Shown here one piece after another: positions 2,624 through 18,773 of a stretch of DNA of 24,235 nt (positions are counted from its first letter, which is position 1; each line of letters opens with the position of its first letter). A model generated the notes under the pieces. That model searched no databases, was not told where the DNA came from, and was given only the letters and a program-made list of their open reading frames with translations. Origin of the DNA: Utricularia gibba (lineage: Eukaryota; Plantae; Magnoliophyta); contig NEEC01000347.1 of assembly GCA_002189035.1 (NCBI GenBank), positions 1 through 24,235 of the forward strand, given 5' to 3'. The translations under genes were made by a program, and so were the position numbers.

Positions 2624-3062
2624 CCAGGGCCGGAAACGATGGGTCATTTTAGAAAAATTCTCATCTCATACGCAAAATAGTCATATAATATATTGACGTA
2701 AATTATTTGGAATTTACATGAATTACGTCAATATGAAACATTTGTTTCCGTTTCGGTTTCATACCTTGGCCGTGGGTGTAATGAGATAACACGAAATAAG
2801 ATTACATAAATTATATATGTAAATAATTAATAATTAAGTGAATTATCATATTTATCATGATATTATATGAATATAATGGTGATAGGGACTCTTGGGAATA
2901 ATATTATCATTTCAATATGTACATAATAAGATAATAAAATATAATTTTTCTTTTTACAGCGGGGCGTCTAAATTGTATAAAAGGAATACATCCCGTATAG
3001 TATAGAGTATTATAATTTAAATGTATTATACATTACATGCTCCTGTATTGTAATTTGTAGTT

Positions 3063-3343
3063 GGGACGGGAGAAAGAGCGATAAAGAGGTACAAGAAGGT
3101 CCTCCAAGGCGTCAAGTACAAATTCTTTTCAAATTTCTCATCAACAACATAATCCCTGTCATCACTTCTTTTCTACTAACCCTTCCACAAAACACAAACC
3201 TGAGTAGTTTCCTGTGCTCTGGATCTTCCTTACGTCCCTATTTGTATATTCAATTCTGCAAATTCTTGCAATCCCTTACTCGAGAAATCAACGCCCTTTT
3301 TTACGGTGCTGCTTCCGCGTCTGCTGCCTTTGCTCTCTTCGCG
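3063..3343 (+). pseudogene. Degraded 5' half of the small 4-TM family gene (left arm of fold-back)
   Basis: Encodes remnants FKFLINNIIPVITS, VLWIFLTSLFVYSILQILAI and FYGAASASAAFALFA, matching 13164-13707 and 17911-18430. It has indels and is truncated at TTCGCG (3343). Confidence 0.85.
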
Positions 3344-3753
3344 GCGGGGGCAGTGCCTCGATGTCAGAATCAGCTTCAGTTTCTCCGGCGGAGGAGATTC
3401 CAGTTATTCCAATTCGTTGCAACAATCAGAGGTATAGAGAGAGCAACAGCTGGAAAGAAAGAGAAACGCGTAGGCATGAAGAACGCGAAGAGGGCAAAGG
3501 GCAGCAGACGCGGAAGCAGCACCGTAAAAAAAGGATGCTGATTTCTCCCAAAATGATTGCAAGAATTGAATATACAAAAAGGGACGCCAGATCCAGCACA
3601 GGAGAACTACTCAGGTTCGTGCTTTGTGGAAGAAGGTCAGTAGAGAAAGAGTGGTGACCGGGATTACGTTGTTGATGAGAAATTTGAAAAGAATTTGTAC
3701 TTCACGCCTTGGAGGAGCTTCTTGTACCTCTCTATCGCTCTTTCTCCGGTCCC
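3063..3753. repeat. Long inverted repeat: arms 3063-3343 and ~3480-3753, ~135-nt loop
   Basis: Arms aligned by eye at roughly 85% identity. A perfect 35-bp stem starts at 3114-3148 (AAGTACAAATTCTTTTCAAATTTCTCATCAACAAC), and a ~30-bp perfect stem pairs 3299-3328 with 3499-3528. Confidence 0.9.
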
Positions 3754-3790
3754 TGATAGATAGCTGCTCCTTGTCGCCCTTCCTTCCCAT
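3344..3790 (-). pseudogene. Inverted, frameshifted copy of the small 4-TM gene with a different N-terminus (MGRKGDKEQLSIRDRRKSDREVQEAPPRREVQILFKFLINNVIPV...)
   Basis: The reverse complement matches the family through FMPTRFSF..ATNWNNWNLL..ETEADSDIEA. There is a candidate ATG at 3790-3788 and several indels. Confidence 0.85.
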
Positions 3791-3864
3791 CCCATGTTGG
3801 ATGGGGTAAATGATTGCAAGAATTTGCAGAATTGAGTACACAGCATTCTGTATAAAAAAGGGCC

Positions 3865-4035
3865 GCTGCTATGGTGTGATCGGAGCTGCGTTTCTTTTTA
3901 TCATGTATAAATTAACAGCCTTCCTTATACACTGAGTGAACGCGTCTTTGATGTATAATATTTTGTTCATTTTGTAATGTTTAATTTAAAAAATGTGGGC
4001 TTTGTGTACTATTTTTTTGGCAAAGAAAAGATAAT
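3865..4035 (+). repeat. 3' end and downstream flank of the 4-TM gene (remnant)
   Basis: GCTATGGTGTGATCGGAGCTG...TTATACACTGAGTGAACGCG...GATGTATAAT...TTTGTGTACTATTTTT aligns with 18418-18615. Confidence 0.8.
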
Positions 4036-4039
4036 TTTC

Positions 4040-4496
4040 GAATCATCGCACTCTTCTGTATCGGATGCTGAGGAGGATCCATCTCTGTCTCTGCCCCAGC
4101 CAACTTGTTCATCGCCGCTTCCGACGGCCAGACGAAACTGCTCCCTTACATCAGGAGCAACGATGCCGATCATCACACTTCACATTCACATCTATGGCCG
4201 TGAATACTACCTCCTGAGTGTTCTTCTTCGTGATCTACAGCCGTGCCATGGCAATGCGCCTCAGTTGCAATGGTTTCATACTAGAGGACTCTGAATCTTC
4301 TCTGCTGCTTGCACCACCGCCGCCTAACTGCAACTTATCTGCAACGCCTTCTGTCTTTTTATGGGCTGTTGATATATTTTCGTTCTCATCCACTGGATTC
4401 AAGTCAGCAGCTATTGATGTGCAGTCATAATTCTCTTCATCTTCTTCGAGTGTCCTTTGCATTGCCTTTAGTTGTTCCTGCTGCCTCACGAATAGC
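4040..4496 (-). pseudogene. Inverted duplicate of the FHA gene's last exon with ~440-bp internal deletion
   Basis: The reverse complement matches 8507-8835 (RQQEQLKAMQRTLEEDEENYDCTSIAA...) joined directly to 9277-9403, with the junction at 4173/4174. It also has small indels and begins mid-exon. Confidence 0.92.
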
Positions 4497-4661
4497 TATG
4501 TGACTAGAATGTGCTAAATTAATATACTTCCACAAACTACAATGGATTTGCACCTTTTTGTGGTACTGAATTGGTCAGTGAAGACACTTGGTTTGCCTTT
4601 TATTTTTTAAATGAGAAGATTCATTTTTTGAAGTTGAGTTGGATCTTGCACCATATGGCAG

Positions 4662-5055
4662 AATTCTGGCACTCTGTGCGAGTGGCCTATTATGATGGGA
4701 CTATATTCCATCCAAAAATTAAGGGCTTCATGATACAAGGTGGTGATCCCACTAACACTGGCAAGGGAGGAACAAGTATATATGGGGTAAAAAGTTCAGT
4801 GATGAGATAAAAGAATCTCTCAAGGCTAGTTTTTCTGTACTTTTTTGGTTTCATGAAAATCATACTATGCTAGTGATATGTTTCTTTTGAACAATCACTG
4901 ATGTTCTTCTACTTCATTGCGTATTACAGCACAATGCTCGAGGTATACTATCCATGGCTAACAGTGGCCCCAACACCAATGGAAGTCAGTTTTTCATAAC
5001 ACACGGCAAGGACTCTACACCATCTTCGGTAAAGTGATTCATGGATTTAAAGTTC
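4662..5055 (+). pseudogene. CYP18-1: Cyclophilin CYP18-1/PPIL3-type, internal exons only
   Basis: Exon 4662-4824 is ~[17 protein letters not shown](R>P)(N>K)[23 protein letters not shown]..., and exon 4930-5055 is [37 protein letters not shown]. Lesions are several frameshifts, a ~16-nt deletion (QPHLN), a GC donor at 4825, the catalytic Arg of FHR changed to Pro, and no 3' end. Confidence 0.92.
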
Positions 5056-8300: not shown

Positions 8301-9417
8301 AAGACGCAGACTAAAAGCTGCCAAGGAAAGAATAATGCTGCGGTACGCATTGTGGGAAATACAAACCTCTTAAAGCTGATAGATAATTTCATACCATCTG
8401 CTTCCTTTGTTTTTAGTTGTAAATGCTTGAAATTCACTTCATGTCGACCCTGCTGCAGCGAAACTCAGCTTCGTGCTTTCTACTCAAGCACAGAGGAAAT
8501 ACAATTGCTATTCGTGAGGCAGCAGGAACAACTAAAGGCAATGCAAAGGACACTCGAAGAAGATGAAGAGAATTATGACTGCACATCAATAGCTGCTGAA
8601 TTGAATCCAGTGGATGAGAACGAAAATATATCAACAGCCCATAAAAAGACAGAAGGCGTTGCAGATAAGTTGCAGTTAGGCGGCGGTGGAGCAAGCAGCA
8701 GAGAAGATTCAGAGTCCTCAAGTGATGAAACCATTGCAACTGAGGCGCATAGCCATGATGCCACGGCTGTAGATCACGAAGAAGAAGACACTCAGGAGGT
8801 AGTATTCACGACCATAGATGTGAATATGAAGTGTGCTTTTGACGTTAACGCCGTTGGAACAGAGCTGATACCCGAGACGGAGGGTGTAGGCACAGCCAGG
8901 ATCCATGAAACTGAGCATGTCTCGGAGACGCAGAGCCAGGGACGTGGCATCGACACCACACAGTTGGAATGCAAGATGGATGTAGACAAACACCCGCCAC
9001 AGATGAGTGCCGTGTGAGTCATGGAGAAGCTAACCCTGAGGCGTCTGGAGCTCAGGATCTGAGAGAATGTGCTCATGGAACAGCAGACCTCTTGGCATCA
9101 GAAGTAGCCGGCAGCTGGGCCTGCAGCACTGCACCTTCAGCCCTTGGGGAAAACGAGTCTGGAGAAGCAAAGATCACGACGCGGGTGATCCCACTGCTTC
9201 CGAGAGTCGGAATGTTGCACCCTCCCATGTTAGAGCTTGTGCGCGAAGAAATCATGAGCGCCGGGCATTGAGCGAGATGATCGGCATCGTTGCTCCTGAT
9301 GTAAGGGAACAGTTTCGTCTGGCCGTCGAAAGCGGCTATGAACAAGTTGGCTCGGGCGGGGATGGATCCTTGTCTGCTTCCGATACAGAAGACTGCGATG
9401 ATTCCAATGAAGGATGA
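5370..9417 (+). CDS. SMAD/FHA-domain coiled-coil protein (Arabidopsis At2g45460-like)
   Basis: Exons: 5370-5663, 5825-6009, 6081-6184, 6317-6397, 6508-6611, 6730-6815, 6976-7176, 7425-7626, 7705-7755, 7833-7931, 8017-8076, 8221-8342, 8459-9417. Motifs VWGVLTAI, LLTSDEHCIGR, DTSTNGT, GLGIGASDGPVSLDDFRSLQRSN, AAREEAWAKVSALELE, ETQLRAFYSST, LLASEVAGSWACSTAPS, ALSEMIGIVAPD. Apparent homopolymer losses at ~6765, ~7005-7012 (2 nt), ~8990 and ~9163. An alternative in-frame ATG is at 5316. Confidence 0.9.
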
Positions 9418-9439: not shown

Positions 9440-9570
9440 CTTCTCTGGTTTCCCCACGACCACAATCACCACCCGTTTTAAACATTTCCCTTTTTTAACA
9501 ACCTTTTTTTCCCAAAATTATCTTTTCGTTTCCAACATTATTCCTCAAAAATAATACACAAAATTCCTCA
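9440..9570 (-). repeat. Inverted copy of the 4-TM/VAP27 intergenic flank element
   Basis: The reverse complement aligns with 10500-10625 and 18550-18680, and it is colinear with 12960-13075. It directly follows the FHA stop codon. Confidence 0.75.
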
Positions 9571-9817
9571 TTTCACCAGGCACCACCACATCCTCATCAA
9601 CTTCTCCGTCCCAGCTCAAACCTTCCCCGGGACAGTCCCCGCCACCATATTCTCCGATTCCACGACCTCCAAGATGGAGAAGCAGATTGAGATTTTCAAA
9701 TTTCTCACCAAATCCATATTCCCCGTCTCGACTTCTCTTCTCCCCACCCTTGTACACGACAAGACGAACCTGAACAGTGCTCCTGTGCTGTAGATCTTCC
9801 TCACGTCTCTCTTTGTG
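9567..9817 (+). pseudogene. 5' fragment of 4-TM exon 2
   Basis: It keeps the acceptor TTCACCAG, then HHHILINFSVPAQTFPGTVPATIFSDSTTSKMEKQIEIFKF.... A TGG>TAG stop lies at 9791-9793, it is truncated at 9817, and it has no exon 1. Confidence 0.88.
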
Positions 9818-9879: not shown

Positions 9880-10404
9880 ATGAAATCCCTCATTTCACCT
9901 CATCAACTTCTCCGTGCCAGGCCAGACCGTCCCGCGACAGTCTACGCCACCATCTTCCGATTCTACGAGCTCCAAGACGGAGAAGCTGGTGGAGATTTTC
10001 AAATTTCTCATCAAAAACATAATCCCCGTCACGACGTCTTTACTCTAAGCCTTCTACACGACAAGACGAACCTGAGTAGTGTTCCTGTGCTGTGGATCTT
10101 CCTCACGTCTCTCTTCGTGTATTCAACTCTACACATTCTCGCCATCATTTACCCTCACAGGAGAAACGGGTGCCTTTTTTACGGTGCTGCTTCCGCCTCT
10201 GCTGCCATTGCTCTCTTCGCGTTCCTCGCGTTCTTCATGCCTACGCGTTTCTCTTTCATTCCAGCTGCTGCTCTCTCTATTGCTGTGATTGTTGCAGCGA
10301 ATTGGGATAACTGGAATCTCCTCCGCCGCGACTCCACCGGAGAAACTGAAGCTGATTCCGACATCGAGGCGCCACCTCCGCCGCCAAGTCTACAGACGGT
10401 GTGA
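9880..10404 (+). pseudogene. 4-TM family copy A: rearranged, 174-aa open frame from an intron-derived ATG
   Basis: The C-terminal ~110 aa match the family (HDKTNLSSVPVLWIFLTSLFVY...ANWDNWNLLRRDS). A 13-nt deletion removes the splice acceptor, there are further 1-, 2- and 1-nt losses, and exon 1 is absent upstream. Confidence 0.7.
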
Positions 10405-10716
10405 TCGGAGGTGCTTGTCTTTTTATCATCAAGGTCTGTTTATACGTTCAGTGTTATATGATCAATTGTACCTATTGTAACGATTAACTACAAATTATGA
10501 ATGGAGTTTTTGTGTATTATTTTTGAGGAATAATGGTGGAAAAGAAAATATAATTTTGGAAAAAGATTGTTAAAGAAGGGCAATGTTTAAAAGGGGAGAT
10601 TCTGGTGGTTGGAAAACCAGATCTCCTCTTCCTGTTCTGTTATTTCTCTCGAATTGTGCGCCGGGATCCGCCACCGCTGCCGGAAAAGTCATTTTTTCGT
10701 CAATTTTCTGTCAGAA

Positions 10717-11902: not shown

Positions 11903-12170
11903 GTTACATCTGATACTATGATAGTGTTATTTCGAAGTTGCCTTAAAATTGAAAAATCCTTTTCTACTGGGGTTATAAGGAAGATGTTTTTATGTTCTCA
12001 TTATCTTAGCGAAAGCAGGAAAATAAATCTTGAGTTAATTCTACACAAGATGTTAGTAGGGATTCTCTTGTCCTGGTGGACTTCATTATCAAATATAATC
12101 GATGTTTTATGAAGAGTGGTATTGCTTTCTTGAGATGCTTTGTGCTGCTAATATTTCAAGGGCTACGTTA

Positions 12171-12275
12171 CTTGACATCTCCCAAGTTTGTGTGGAGCGT
12201 CACCGCCTTGGGTGACCCAAATTGTTCGTGCAGCCAAAAACAGGATACATAATCAAGACTGAAAAATCGAAACAT
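12171..12275 (-). pseudogene. CYP18-1: 5' piece of CYP18-1/PPIL3-type cyclophilin
   Basis: After acceptor CCCAAG, 12206-12171 encodes AVTLHTNLGDVK (cf. the CYP18-1 N-terminus MSVTLHTNLGDIK), then breaks into VAP27 intron sequence. A candidate ATG micro-exon at 12275-12273 is inferred. Confidence 0.85.
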
Positions 12276-13163: not shown

Positions 13164-13837
13164 TTATATACGATAAAAAGAAAAGCAGCTTCGATCACAC
13201 ACCATCAGTAGCCTGCGCGGCGGTGGTGGTGCCACGATGTCGGGATTAGTTTCAGTTTCTCCGGCGGAGTCACGGCGGAGGAGATTCCAGTTATCCCAAT
13301 TCGCTACAACAATCAGAGCAATAGAGAGAGAAACTGCTGGAATGAAAGAGAAACGCGTAGGCATGAAAAACGCGAGGAACGCAAAGAGAGCAAAGGCAGC
13401 GGAGGCGGAAGCAGCAGCGTAAAAAAGGCGCCCGTTTCTCCTCTGAGGGTAAATGATGGCGAGAATGTGTAGAGTTGAATACACAAAGAGAGACGTCAGG
13501 AAGATCTGTTGCACACCGTTCAGGTTCGTCTTGTCGCGTACAAGTGTTAGGAGAAATATCGCGACGGGGATGATGGTTTTGGTGAGAAATTTAAAAATCT
13601 CCATCAGCTTCTCCGTCTTGGAGCTCGTAGTATCGGAGAAGATGGTGGCGTGGACTATCGCGGGGGAAGGTTCGGCCTGCACGGAGAAGTTGATGAAGAT
13701 GTGGTGCCTGGTGAAATGGGGGATGTCATTTTCGTTTCACACAGAAACTGAGCTAACTGTAAGTGATCAGAAACATACCTTGCCGCGAACGAGGGTTCCG
13801 CCGAGCCATAACCGCGTGCGTTCTGGAAAGCGGCCAT
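13164..13837 (-). CDS. Uncharacterised small 4-TM protein, copy B (intact, two exons, 200 aa)
   Basis: complement(join(13164..13707,13779..13837)). Exon 1 is MAAFQNARGYGSAEPSFAA, followed by a 71-nt GT-AG intron (GTATGT...TTCACCAG) and exon 2 R-HHIFINFSVQAEPSPAIVHATIF.... There are four hydrophobic segments. TATA lies ~40 nt upstream. An extra TG near 13200 reads through the family stop, adding 11 aa. Confidence 0.8.
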
Positions 13838-13880: not shown

Positions 13881-15295
13881 GGACCATTGAGGAAATTAGC
13901 CGATTTATTCAACCAGTGACGCATACGATCAACCTGTGACGCCTAATACCTTTCGATTTCACATCCACATTTTATTTCAACAAATAATGAAAAGTCTTTT
14001 TGGAGAAATCTTTTGTCTTATTAAACACCTTTTGATTTGACATCCTCATCTTTTTTCAATAAATAATGCATCCTCATCTTAGAACCTGTGAGAAAAAGCA
14101 TCATCTTAATCGTAGTAAACACTCTTTTTTTTTTTTTGGAGAAAAGTTAATACACCACTTAAACTATAATCTTCACTTATTTAAAGAGAGCGGCATTCAT
14201 ATGAGTTAAATAATTATTTATACTCAAATTTACCAATTAAAATTTTTTGTCTTTTTTTTTAAAAAAAATTGAAATCATCATTGCTTTCGTCATTAATTTA
14301 TTCAACATAAAAGAATAAATTTTAGGACTACTTTATACATAAAGTGAAGAATAAGTTAATGGTAAAAATACGGTCAAAATGTTAAAATAATAAATTCAAA
14401 TAGAAAGTTTACATTTTTGGAATGTACAAGAATTACGTCAATACACATAAAACCAATCATATGATTAATAATTGTATTTTTTGGAATTATTTAATTTTTA
14501 TAATAACTTAGGACCATATTTGTAGTTTTAATAAAAATAATAATAAAATAAAGATACTCACCGTGTTTGTACCTGTGGCTATGTTTTGCAACCATTTTCA
14601 TTCTCAAAATGAGAAATTACCAGTTTTGCAAAACAGACATGTTTTCATTTTTTAAAATGAAAATTTTTATAAAAAAATAAATGAAAAATGATACTCATTC
14701 TAACATGATCGTTTTTCTAATAATATCATTATTTCATTTTTTTATTTTTATAATTTGGTGAATTAAAATTTATTTTTTTTATGTAAATTCTTATTTTAAT
14801 ATTGATTTCTCATTTTGTAATACAACATATTTTCATTATGTAATCTTTTTTTAAAGTTACATAACAACAATTTATTTCATTTATCATTCTTATTTAGTTT
14901 ATACCTTATTGGTTTCCGTGCGGTCGTCCCCGACGGTGTACGAGACGTGGGACCCCTATCGCCCCAAGAAAAATTTCTGCACCTAACATCCATTAATGTT
15001 GTGACGGTGGATTGGAATCATGACATTTCACCAAAACTAAAAAAAGTGAATATTAATAAAAAATATATTATATTAAGTCTAGGATGTATTTGTTAAGATT
15101 TAGTTCAGGAACTTTTATTATTAGCTATTACAAACTATGTATTATCAAAATATCACTCAATCATAACATATGAATAAAATTATTTATTTTCAAATTGAAG
15201 AACATGGAGTGTTTTTTATATAAATAGAAATCACTCTAATACATCATTAAAATTTATTTCTTAAATTGAATGCAAACTTGAAAGAAGTTTATTCA

Positions 15296-15494
15296 AGGAT
15301 AGGATAGGATAGGATAAAATCAGCGTTCCAATGCGGGGCCCTTTCTTTTAGTGGACCCCAACCAACTCCTCCAACCGTTGGAGTCCAACGTGGAAACAAA
15401 ATGGCGAGGGCAAGTCACTGTTGATCATCGGGGCCCATAACTTCTCGAACTAATCAACGCCACTTAAGTGGATCCTTTCTTTTAGTGGACCCCA
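15296..15494. repeat. (AGGAT)4 followed by a 21-bp direct repeat pair and a 15-bp palindrome
   Basis: AGGAT x4 at 15296-15315; CCTTTCTTTTAGTGGACCCCA at 15340-15360 and 15474-15494; CTCCAAC-C-GTTGGAG at 15369-15383. Confidence 0.85.
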
Positions 15495-15750
15495 CGCAAC
15501 CCCTCCAAGTTATTAATGTAAAATAATACATAAGATTGTTTATTGACATCTAAATTCATGAAAAATAAATAATTAAATAAACATAATTTAATATTTTAAT
15601 AACATTATCTATTTACCAAAGCAAAATAGAGGAGTACATCTATTTAACCAATTTTTTATCCACGTCATCTATTTTGGTTTTCAAAATATAGAGCCGCGTG
15701 AGGCTACGCAGTCCGACGTCACTCCTGGTCATCTGGCCCCACAGTAGCAC

Positions 15751-15811
15751 CTTGGGAGCCGAACCAGGGTTCCGCCATGCCGTAGCCCCGTGCGTTCTGG
15801 AAGGCGGCCAT
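15751..15811 (-). pseudogene. Orphan exon 1 of the 4-TM family
   Basis: ATG GCC GCC TTC CAG AAC GCA CGG GGC TAC GGC ATG GCG GAA CCC TGG TTC GGC TCC CAA G|GT encodes MAAFQNARGYGMAEPWFGSQ, matching 13837-13779 and 17766-17824. No exon 2 follows. Confidence 0.85.
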
Positions 15812-17507
15812 TCGGCGGGAAGGGGTAACATAGTGGGCAAGGCGGCCCAATCATCTACGGATCTATCTTTTTGTCCAATTTCTCGGTATGGAATTGTAAG
15901 GTTTTATGGTGTTCTAAACAGTATTCGAATTCTGATATTGGGACAGATTGAACTCTTCTATTCAATTATCCTCGTGTTCCTATATCTCTTCTCCCCTTAC
16001 CTGCATCTGCATCTGTCAGCGCGGGCATTTATCAAATAGGATTATTTACACAATTTTACAAATAACACAAACCTATCATTTTACTTGGGATTATTTACAC
16101 AATTTTCATGTTTGAAATTGATTCTCGTTTTCACTTAATTGCACTCGTTCACATTCAATGAACAATCACACCCAATAACAATAAGGACATGGCACTGATA
16201 AAACTCAGTAATATAACATTCAGTAATATACTTCAAAAGTGGAACATCTCATAACACCCGATCAAACCTTACAATCCATTTAAAAATAAGAACAAATTGT
16301 TGCAATCTCTTAGAAACTGTAACACCCTTCAAAAACCACTTGAAATTCCAAAAAATGGACAATGAATTTGTTAAAAATAATAGTTATCACTTTTGTGAAT
16401 TAGATGCACAAGAATCGATGATATGTTGTATAAATAGTTTATAAATGCATCAAACATAAGTAATGATAATGCATGAATCGTAAAGAATGTTACACCACAT
16501 TCACTAGGATAAAAAGCAAACTTGTTAATGTTCCATTTCAGGTAAACATGTACAATAAACAATTGATTAAATTACCAAATAAAAAAAATTACAGAGTTGA
16601 AGTATGTTACTGAAGAGGAATTGGATGTAAGGAGATCAACACACAAAGTGTAACGTCTACCAGATTACGCATATTCATTAGTCAAGCAAATTGTTGCAGA
16701 TTTCTTTAATAGTAAAAGGTTTTCTTGTGAATATACACACGTTGATTAAGGAAGCATCCTGGATATCACCCAAAATGGAGTTCCCTTTAACGTATAAGTC
16801 AACGCAAAGTGAGAGTCGAAAAAATTGGACGCGATTTTAATAAAGGTTGAGGGTTGGTGCAGAGTGGACAACAAACATTAAAATTCGTAATGCATATTAT
16901 AAAGTTTCATGACATTCTCCTTATTTTAATGAATGATATCACGATATTGTAAACAAATTTGGGCCAATTTCCTATCATATTTAAAAAAGAATTGCATATT
17001 CGTGATTGTATATTGTTTGTGAATACCATAAGAAAAATTATACTATTATATTATATTATAAAATATCCATTAAATATAATGCTATTTTTGGGTTTAGCCA
17101 CGCCCAATCTACAATTATATCTCTCCCATAAAATTGATTGGGCCTCCTCTGTTTTTTAAATTTTTAATTCAAATTATGTAGAATATAGTCAGTTTTAAAA
17201 TTATATGAATAGAATTGATTTAAGATTGTAAAATTATTTTATAAGATAACATAAAATTATATTGATTTTAATAAAATAAAAGATATATTATAAAATTTAA
17301 TATATTAAATTATTGTATAATTTAATATTATAATATAAATGTATTTTTAGAATAGATAAAAATTGAATAATATAATTTTTAGAATTAATCTCTTATTTAA
17401 TCTTTAAAATAAAAATTCAATAAATTTAATAATTTCTAAAATTAATTATAAGATTTAAATTTCTAATTTTAGAATCTTAAGAAATTAAATATAGTTCCTT
17501 CAAAAAA

Positions 17508-17616
17508 TTTATAACACAAAACCGAACCATGGTTAGAAATATAATTTCAAAATTGAGTGCCTGGAACACGGTTTATAACACAAAACCGAACCATGGTTAG
17601 AAATATAATTTCAAAA
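17508..17616. repeat. Perfect 45-bp direct repeat (period 64 bp) upstream of 4-TM copy C
   Basis: TTTATAACACAAAACCGAACCATGGTTAGAAATATAATTTCAAAA at 17508-17552 and 17572-17616, plus a third partial AAAACCGAACCACGGTT to ~17630. Confidence 0.9.
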
Positions 17617-17728
17617 CCGAACCACGGTTTGGCTGCCTGTGTGGAAAAAGTGGGCCCTCTGTGTACAATTACCGAAATAGCCAAGAAATGATCAGCCTCC
17701 TGATCGTGATTCCTGAATCCCCCCCTCT

Positions 17729-17765: not shown

Positions 17766-18430
17766 ATGGCTGCTTACCAGGACGCACGCGGCTAAGGCAC
17801 GGCGGAACCCTCGTTCGCGCCAAGGTATGAAACCGAAACAATTGTTCCTGTTCACTTACAGTTAGCTCAGTATCTTTGTGAAACGACAATGAAATTCTTC
17901 ATGTCACCAGGCACCACATCCTCATCAATTTCTCCGTGCCAGGCCAAACCTTCGCCGGGACAGTCCACGCCACCATCTTCTCCGATTCTACGACCTCCAT
18001 GACGGAGAAGCTGATTGAGATTTTCAAATTTCTCACCAAATCCATATTCCCCGTCGCGACTTCTCTTCTCCTCACCTTTCTACACGACAAGACGAACCTG
18101 AACAGTGTTCCTGTGCTGTGGATCTTCCTCACGTCTCTCTTTGTGTATTCAACTCTACACATTCTCACCATCATTTACCCCCACTGGAAAAAAGAGCGCC
18201 TTTTTTACGGAGCTGCTTCCGCCTCTGCTGCCTTTGCTCTCTTCGCGTTCCTCGCGTTCTTCATGCCTACGCGTTTCTCTTTCATTCCAGCTGTTGTTCT
18301 CTCTATTGCTCTGATTGTTGCAGTGAATTGGGATAACTGGAATCTCCTTCGCCGCGACTCCGCCGGAGAAACTGAAGCTAATTCCGACATCCAGGCACCG
18401 CCGCCGCCGCGCAGGCTACTGATGGTGTGA
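17766..18430 (+). CDS. Uncharacterised small 4-TM protein, copy C (exon 1 stop; in-frame restart at 17999, 143 aa)
   Basis: join(17766..17824,17911..18430) with an 86-nt GT-AG intron. TAA at codon 10 (17793-17795). The next ATG in the spliced mRNA is 17999, in frame, and precedes all four hydrophobic segments. Confidence 0.7.
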
Positions 18431-18773
18431 TCGGAGCTGTGGTTTTCTTTTTATCATAAATAAATTAACGACTGTTAACAGCCTTATACACTGAGAGTGA
18501 ACGCGTGTTTGATGTATAATATCTACCATTTCGCAATGTTTAACTACAAATTATGAATGGAGTTTTTGTGTATTATTTTTCAGGAATAATGTTGCAAAAG
18601 AAAATATAATTTTGGAAAAAGGTTGTTAAAAAAAAGCAATGTTTAAAAGGGGAGATTCTGGTGGTTGGAAAACCAGATCTCTTCTTCCTGTTCTGTTATT
18701 TCTCTCGAATTGTGCGCCGGGATCCGCCACCGCTGCCGGAAAAAGTCATTTTTTCGTCAATTTTCTGTCAGAA

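Follow-up and report, generated by a model that had tools for sequence, protein, structure and literature searches.

In a window of 24,235 nucleotides from Utricularia gibba (the whole of contig NEEC01000347.1), we have analyzed an inverted repeat at 3063-3753 and confirm that it is real. With a probability of roughly 0.62, we regard this fold-back as a genuine but degenerate rearrangement scar in a dead gene copy that is decaying neutrally. The locus is best read as the broken fourth copy (D) of a family of small ORFs with four hydrophobic stretches (the 4-TM family), of which three further copies (A, B and C) lie in the same window. It can be folded into a long RNA hairpin and resembles its relatives closely enough to raise the question of small-RNA production, yet the evidence on function leans towards a neutral relic. 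The parts of D and its relatives are as follows.

3063-3343, + strand: left arm (segment P), a sense 5' fragment with helices 1-2 and the start of helix 3, carrying frameshifts
3114-3148, pairing with 3668-3702: 35-nt perfect stem, from the arm alignment
3297-3326, pairing with 3502-3531: 30-nt perfect stem, from the arm alignment; 32 nt if the gap is placed otherwise
3337-3343: arm-switch junction, CTTCGCG common to the end of P and the end of inverted Q, from the overlapping blastn ends (3343 sense, 3337 antisense) and the family alignment
3344-3483, - strand: hairpin loop (segment Q), antisense rest of helix 3, helix 4 and C-terminal tail
3484-3753, - strand: right arm, antisense copy of P with a premature stop and several indels
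3754-3864: filler of 111 nt separating the right arm from the retained 3' end
3803-3842, - strand: inverted helix-2 scrap of 37-40 nt, a third D-type copy inside the filler
3865-4042, + strand: segment R, last codons, stop and 3' UTR of D, aligning to C 18415-18617 and B 13212-13046
4037-4499, - strand: inverted duplicate of the 3' exon of an FHA-domain gene, directly after R, matching 8504-9407 in reverse
9561-9817: partial 5' copy A', preceding copy A
9880-10404, + strand: copy A, with helix 1 shifted out of frame by a 1-nt deletion; possible target
13164-13682, - strand: copy B, open ORF; possible target
17936-18430, + strand: copy C, open ORF; possible target

An earlier, sequence-only reading of this DNA had described inverted arms of ~280 bp and ~85% identity at these positions, and its description holds. 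In a local gapped alignment of 3063-3343 (281 nt) with the reverse complement of 3484-3753 (270 nt), 243 of 288 columns match (84%), with 20 mismatches, 11 indel events and 8.7% indel columns, and blastn aligns arm to arm with an E of 5e-81. The repeat search returned an ungapped outer block (3063-3181 with 3635-3753) of 91% identity, and the inner pairs are collinear and joined by the gapped alignment. Both perfect stems, announced as 35 and ~30 bp, were recovered by alignment, and the second differs from copies A, C and B by the 1, 2 and 3 nt that had been counted. The pairing had been said to extend over the coding region of TM1-TM3; the arms take in helices 1 and 2 together with the first part of helix 3. 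RNA folding of 3063-3753, which the same reading had proposed as a check, predicts one long hairpin from either strand (-431 kcal/mol and z -38 for the + strand, -444 kcal/mol and z -51 for the - strand), spanning 691 nt with a stem of ~280 bp. Both strands fold about equally well, so G:U pairs favour neither of them. Inverted arms, high complementarity and a long stem-loop, the marks of an endogenous long inverted repeat, are thus all found at 3063-3753. The match and indel values of the arms lie within the LIRBase limits (80% match, 10% indel), and their lengths fall short of the LIRBase arm filter of at least 400 nt, which is a catalogue filter and no biological requirement.

The segments of D can be followed through the family alignment. 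The left arm spans columns 55-352, and blastn aligns it in sense orientation with A 9996-10221 (81%) and C 18021-18247 (78%). In the opposite orientation, blastn pairs 3337-3690 with A 9996-10388 and C 18021-18414. The whole of 3337-3753 is a nearly complete antisense copy that extends from a point shortly ahead of the stop codon to the 5' column where P begins, and the outer ends of both arms lie in the same alignment column. The 140-nt loop is therefore no mere spacer: it consists of the 3' half of this gene copy in antisense, a segment that copy D has in inverted orientation only and that is about 88-91% identical to A, B and C. The arm switch had been placed on a CGCG microhomology at 3340-3343, and it does fall there; these 4 nt are certain, and the stretch common to both sides today gives an upper bound of 7 nt.

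At the other end of the inverted part, Q stops at the equivalent of C 18414 and R starts at that of C 18415, without loss or overlap. This conservative break indicates that D was formerly a contiguous P-Q-R gene on the + strand. Within the filler, the inverted helix-2 scrap reached an alignment score of 54 against a shuffle maximum of 27, and it was also seen by the repeat search and by blastn. It retains a 9-nt piece that has since gone from the right arm, together with a motif that has since been altered in the left arm. As the scrap keeps these ancestral D states, it is likely to have been copied from D around the time of the rearrangement. For the remaining filler, the alignment search detected no source for 3754-3802, and for 3843-3864 it gave 11 nt of marginal, inverted similarity to the sequence where helix 3 begins.

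Judged by their reading frames, neither arm would be able to encode the protein. Frameshifting gaps occur in both arms, the sense copy is without Q, the ORF at 3611-3841(-) terminates after helix 1, and D is spanned by no ORF. Family homology is thus combined with a disrupted frame, as in a pseudogene. Beside either arm, homology to the 5' or promoter sequence of the family did not exceed that of shuffled controls in blastn and alignment. Across columns 55-519 of the family alignment, D is also a mosaic, its 3' half being 88-94% identical to A, B and C, equal to their mutual similarity, and its 5' half 58-77%. Since this pattern is present in both arms, the mosaic is older than the fold-back, and it may go back to an older gene conversion or to a chimera with another subfamily. 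We advise annotating 3063-4042 as a rearranged pseudogene with hairpin potential, neither as a gene nor as a MIRNA.

The inverted FHA-exon duplicate beside D places the locus inside a larger inverted segmental duplication. When its two parts are compared with their counterparts (4174-4499 versus 8504-8835 and 4037-4174 versus 9276-9407), K is 0.02 in one part and 0.09 in the adjacent part, and this uneven age suggests that the duplicate has a composite origin or underwent gene conversion; the left copy lacks about 440 nt (8836-9275). Just past the end of the FHA gene lies a 120-nt inverted fragment of the 4-TM/VAP-like spacer (9444-9563, - strand, matching 10508-10621 and 18564-18677). It mirrors the tail-to-tail layout at D and is probably all that is left of a 4-TM copy in convergent orientation. 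The window further contains a cyclophilin gene split by strand, with a Pro_isomerase exon at 4571-4810 (+, Pfam E 1.7e-8) and an N-terminal 'VTLHTNLGDVK' piece at ~12168-12215 (-), ~7.5 kb away.

The way in which the two arms have diverged supports the neutral reading. Between the arms, K is 0.080, and indels occur at 0.55 per substitution and 4.2 per 100 nt. For the non-coding spacer, the comparison between A and C gives a K of 0.071, with 0.52 indels per substitution and 3.5 per 100 nt, and the family ORFs show 0.10 indels per substitution. Because K and the indel ratio of the arms match those of the local non-coding spacer, the arms behave as unconstrained DNA, in the manner of a pseudogene. 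Chance can account for the lengths of the two perfect runs (35 and 30 bp): with 31 breaks among 243 matches, the probability of a longest run of at least 35 is 0.32 and that of a second run of at least 30 is 0.12. No sign of hairpin maintenance was found in the arm divergence, the run lengths, the similarity to the paralogues or the strand folding. Given the neutral decay of both arms, the capacity to form a ~280-bp hairpin most likely arose as a by-product and was not selected for.

One feature departs from a simple neutral model, as the changes that could be polarised since arm formation number 6 in the left arm versus 21 in the right; misalignment may account for part of this imbalance. At a plant-typical neutral rate, assumed from Arabidopsis estimates, a K of 0.08 corresponds to a few million years, which we infer to be the age of the fold-back. 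The near-identity of the second stem to the paralogues could have been ascribed to recent gene conversion from A, B or C. Conversion since arm formation is unsupported, as a derived G is common to both arms and absent from A, B and C; conversion preceding the formation of the fold-back is possible.

An MSP-domain (VAP-like) gene, or its first exon, lies downstream of each of A, B and C. The frames of B and C are open, with in-frame indels only, and pairwise dN/dS among the three copies is 0.5-0.76. As 'targets', they would be weakly constrained and partly decaying genes. Searches with the family, for which the references were single-exon ORFs only, returned nothing: Pfam gave sub-threshold noise and nothing at or near gathering score for the ORFs of the family and the fold-back, a word-based protein search with copy C as query gave 0 hits, profile HMMER with A+B+C had 0 hits at E <= 0.001 among 1.84 billion representatives, and exact look-up of nine ORF variants of the family and the fold-back found none in the protein collection. 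By these searches, the 4-TM family is an orphan, a plant-specific family of small membrane proteins.

Several smaller traits of the family may be recorded here. Copy C has an in-frame TAA in its short 5' ORF (blemishes were noted over 17766-17830, 10030-10050 and 13164-13200), copy B has lost the family stop codon and reads on for 11 codons, and the start codon of the membrane ORF differs in position among A', B and C. A solo 5' piece of the family at 15760-15813 (-), 85-87% identical to the upstream regions of B and C, has a short ORF beginning MAAFQNARGYG with no membrane ORF behind it, and lies inside an AT-rich stretch (14000-17500, GC 23-35%). This stretch is bordered by short tandem-like repeats of a 'aaaaccgaaccatggttagaaatataatttcaaaa'-type unit at 17500-17625, just upstream of the 5' region of C. 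About 290 nt to the left of the fold-back, 2750-2770 (-) stands alone in matching C 17819-17839 perfectly over 21 nt (E 1e-5, from a search of small size). The matched stretch is the final part of the short 5' ORF of the family with the gtatg that follows; it may be another templated micro-fragment, or chance.

Among the alternatives to a neutral relic, an active hairpin-RNA locus survives best, and we hold it to be somewhat unlikely. Pol II would here cross both arms, and Dicer-like enzymes would cut the hairpin into 21-24-nt siRNAs. In the model reportedly set out by Allen et al. 2004, MIRNA genes are born by inverted duplication of their target genes. As that model implies, the arm-gene homology at D reaches beyond a small-RNA site (blastn identity of the arms with A, B and C is 72-81% across ~220 nt) and the founders are still present. 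The hairpin is predicted to be stable from either strand, and stem 21-mers with 0-2 mismatches to A, B and C are present in both arms; for A, those with at most 2 mismatches number 58 in the left arm and 39 in the right. A + strand gene ends near 2621, ~440 nt upstream of the fold-back, and together with the sense 3' UTR retained downstream it could provide read-through transcription and termination. Were such read-through to cross the locus, Dicer-like cutting of the stem would yield siRNAs, some of them matching A, B and C.

The literature lends this route some plausibility. When long inverted repeats are transcribed, DCL2, DCL3 and DCL4 turn them into siRNAs of 21-24 nt with no need of RDRs, and MIR genes are suspected to start out from such repeats (PMC10827316). 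Gene-derived inverted duplications are documented as a source of siRNAs or young MIRNAs (10.1101/2024.07.25.605110, PMC10827316, PMC8728187). Hairpins with mismatches are still diced and active in plants (PMC9263138), so that an arm identity of 84% is compatible with activity. On the other hand, a long inverted repeat need not be transcribed, according to the LIRBase authors, who in rice MH63 counted 159 candidate hpRNA-producing loci and compared 6325 long inverted repeats with transposons (PMC8728187); only a few percent of the rice long inverted repeats qualified as candidates (PMC8728187). In Arabidopsis halleri, an origin of new miRNA genes from coding genes was judged rare (10.1101/2024.07.25.605110).

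The locus itself also speaks against activity. The flanks of the arms carry no promoter homology, the divergence looks neutral, no duplex is preserved beyond chance, and the would-be targets are weakly constrained, with A partly broken. Moreover, the best target matches lie in the loop, where 50 of 120 21-mers have at most 1 mismatch to A. The left arm reaches this with 32 of 261 and the right arm with 17 of 250. This highest similarity reflects the conservation of the 3' half across the family and not a focus on the stem. The neutral-looking divergence is compatible with a young, weakly selected siRNA source. Stronger versions fare worse. That siRNAs from the hairpin lower the mRNA or methylate the DNA of A, B and C, with a measurable effect on the family, is improbable. 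The same low standing applies to a young hairpin-siRNA gene, born by intragenic template switching, transcribed by read-through, ended by its own 3' UTR terminator and damping its three neighbouring paralogues. Of the labels proposed by the sequence-only reading, 'candidate hairpin-RNA' is a fair one, whereas 'proto-MIRNA regulator of its own family' claims more than the data bear out.

Returning to the neutral relic, we propose that D originally lay as P-Q-R on the + strand, tail to tail with the duplicated piece of the FHA-gene exon, and that one complex event could have left it in the order P, inverted (Q+P), filler and R, the short filler including an inverted scrap of 40 nt. A first template switch would have led replication away from the sense strand where helix 3 begins and onto the opposite strand at the Q/R boundary, and a second switch back would have passed through a brief templated insertion, the helix-2 scrap. 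Afterwards, both arms would have decayed at the local neutral rate. The suggestion that the arm switch fits template switching has gained from this analysis, since the microhomology at 3337-3343 is now accompanied by a templated scrap at the other junction; junction microhomology and a short templated insertion are both expected of this mechanism. D seems to display every applicable hallmark of a neutrally decaying rearranged pseudogene generated by template switching. The mechanism of origin and the absence of function are what we infer from the present-day letters.

A relic formed in two steps, by a partial 5' tandem duplication followed by a simple inversion of P+Q, is rather unlikely. The locus of copy A, where A' (9561-9817) precedes the longer copy, shows that partial 5' tandem copies arise in this family, and the conservative Q/R break is as it would be in a plain inversion. 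However, two events with a shared breakpoint would be required, and the scrap, the filler at 3754-3864 and the microhomology at the switch would stay unexplained. Such a path explains less than serial template switching does.

Very little speaks for an assembly or chimeric-read artefact, with no fold-back in the genome. Long-read fold-back chimeras do generate palindromes, yet they would give near-identical head-to-head arms, and 20 substitutions and 11 indels separate the arms seen here. The loop consists of gene sequence that has diverged, and the far junction contains a filler and a third diverged scrap. The earlier judgement that arm divergence makes an artefact unlikely is thus borne out by the diverged arms and the gene-derived loop. 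A transposon origin (MITE or Pack-type) was considered and rejected: the arms are gene-derived, and by eye neither terminal repeats nor a target-site duplication are seen at 3063 / 3753.

Least probable of all is a true MIRNA or late proto-MIRNA from which DCL1 would excise one miRNA/miRNA* duplex, for instance from the 30- or 35-bp stem, because its sole support is the inverted-duplication origin with the perfect stems, whereas these stems are within chance length, the foldback of 691 nt with its ~280-bp stem far exceeds the ~300 nt or less that the plant MIRNA annotation criteria of Axtell and Meyers are said to allow, and no described MIR family is represented, Rfam 15 giving no match at gathering threshold in the whole window nor at E <= 1 in 2800-4100. 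Structurally, D agrees with an endogenous inverted repeat and with the inverted-duplication model, and it differs from a MIRNA in length and family.

The present value of the locus is mainly descriptive. It offers a nucleotide-level record of how a birth-and-death cluster makes self-complementary pseudogenes via template switching, and it illustrates that fold-backs of this type can decay neutrally over millions of years. If the hairpin were active, D would be a clean natural case of the inverted-duplication route to regulatory small RNAs, with the founders adjacent and the breakpoints readable. If D were a live siRNA gene, it would represent an intermediate caught in the act between a rearranged pseudogene and a MIRNA, in a lineage-specific family and a compact genome.

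Compared with known systems, D is closest in its formation to the complex rearrangements attributed to replication template switching (FoSTeS/MMBIR). As in those, the switch has a microhomology of 4-7 nt, the second junction has a templated insertion from the same gene, and the outcome is a duplicated and inverted segment, here with a conservative Q/R break; the difference is that the mechanism at D would be deduced from a single sequence of today, when a few million years have passed since the event. Like the pseudogenes of birth-and-death clusters, D is truncated, frameshifted, promoterless and neutral, and sits amid partial copies and segmental duplications. Most pseudogenes, in contrast, are without the self-complementary layout that gives D its potential for activity at the RNA level.

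Gene-derived young MIRNA loci, of which MIR161 and MIR163 of Arabidopsis are examples, share with D that their arms are an inverted coding segment of a family with members nearby and that the similarity to the founder reaches well beyond a 21-nt site. D is unlike them in that its hairpin of 691 nt is far longer, there is no sign of one preserved duplex and no promoter is carried along, and its properties are read here from DNA alone. Aha-miR217 of A. halleri consists of a short direct and a longer (263-bp) inverted piece of an exon (10.1101/2024.07.25.605110), and the same combination of a short direct plus a longer inverted piece is found at D.

Loci producing endoIR-siRNAs, such as IR71 of Arabidopsis, Mu killer of maize and the germin-like-protein (GLP) repeat of rice (PMC10827316, PMC8728187), have two imperfect inverted arms around a loop, as D has. 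For the rice GLP repeat, targeting of paralogues in trans has been proposed, and D has the same potential; both of its arms derive as fragments from a single dead gene copy, whereas in rice two adjacent genes make up the repeat (PMC8728187). By its layout, D would work like a gene-derived endogenous inverted repeat, and it may be one.
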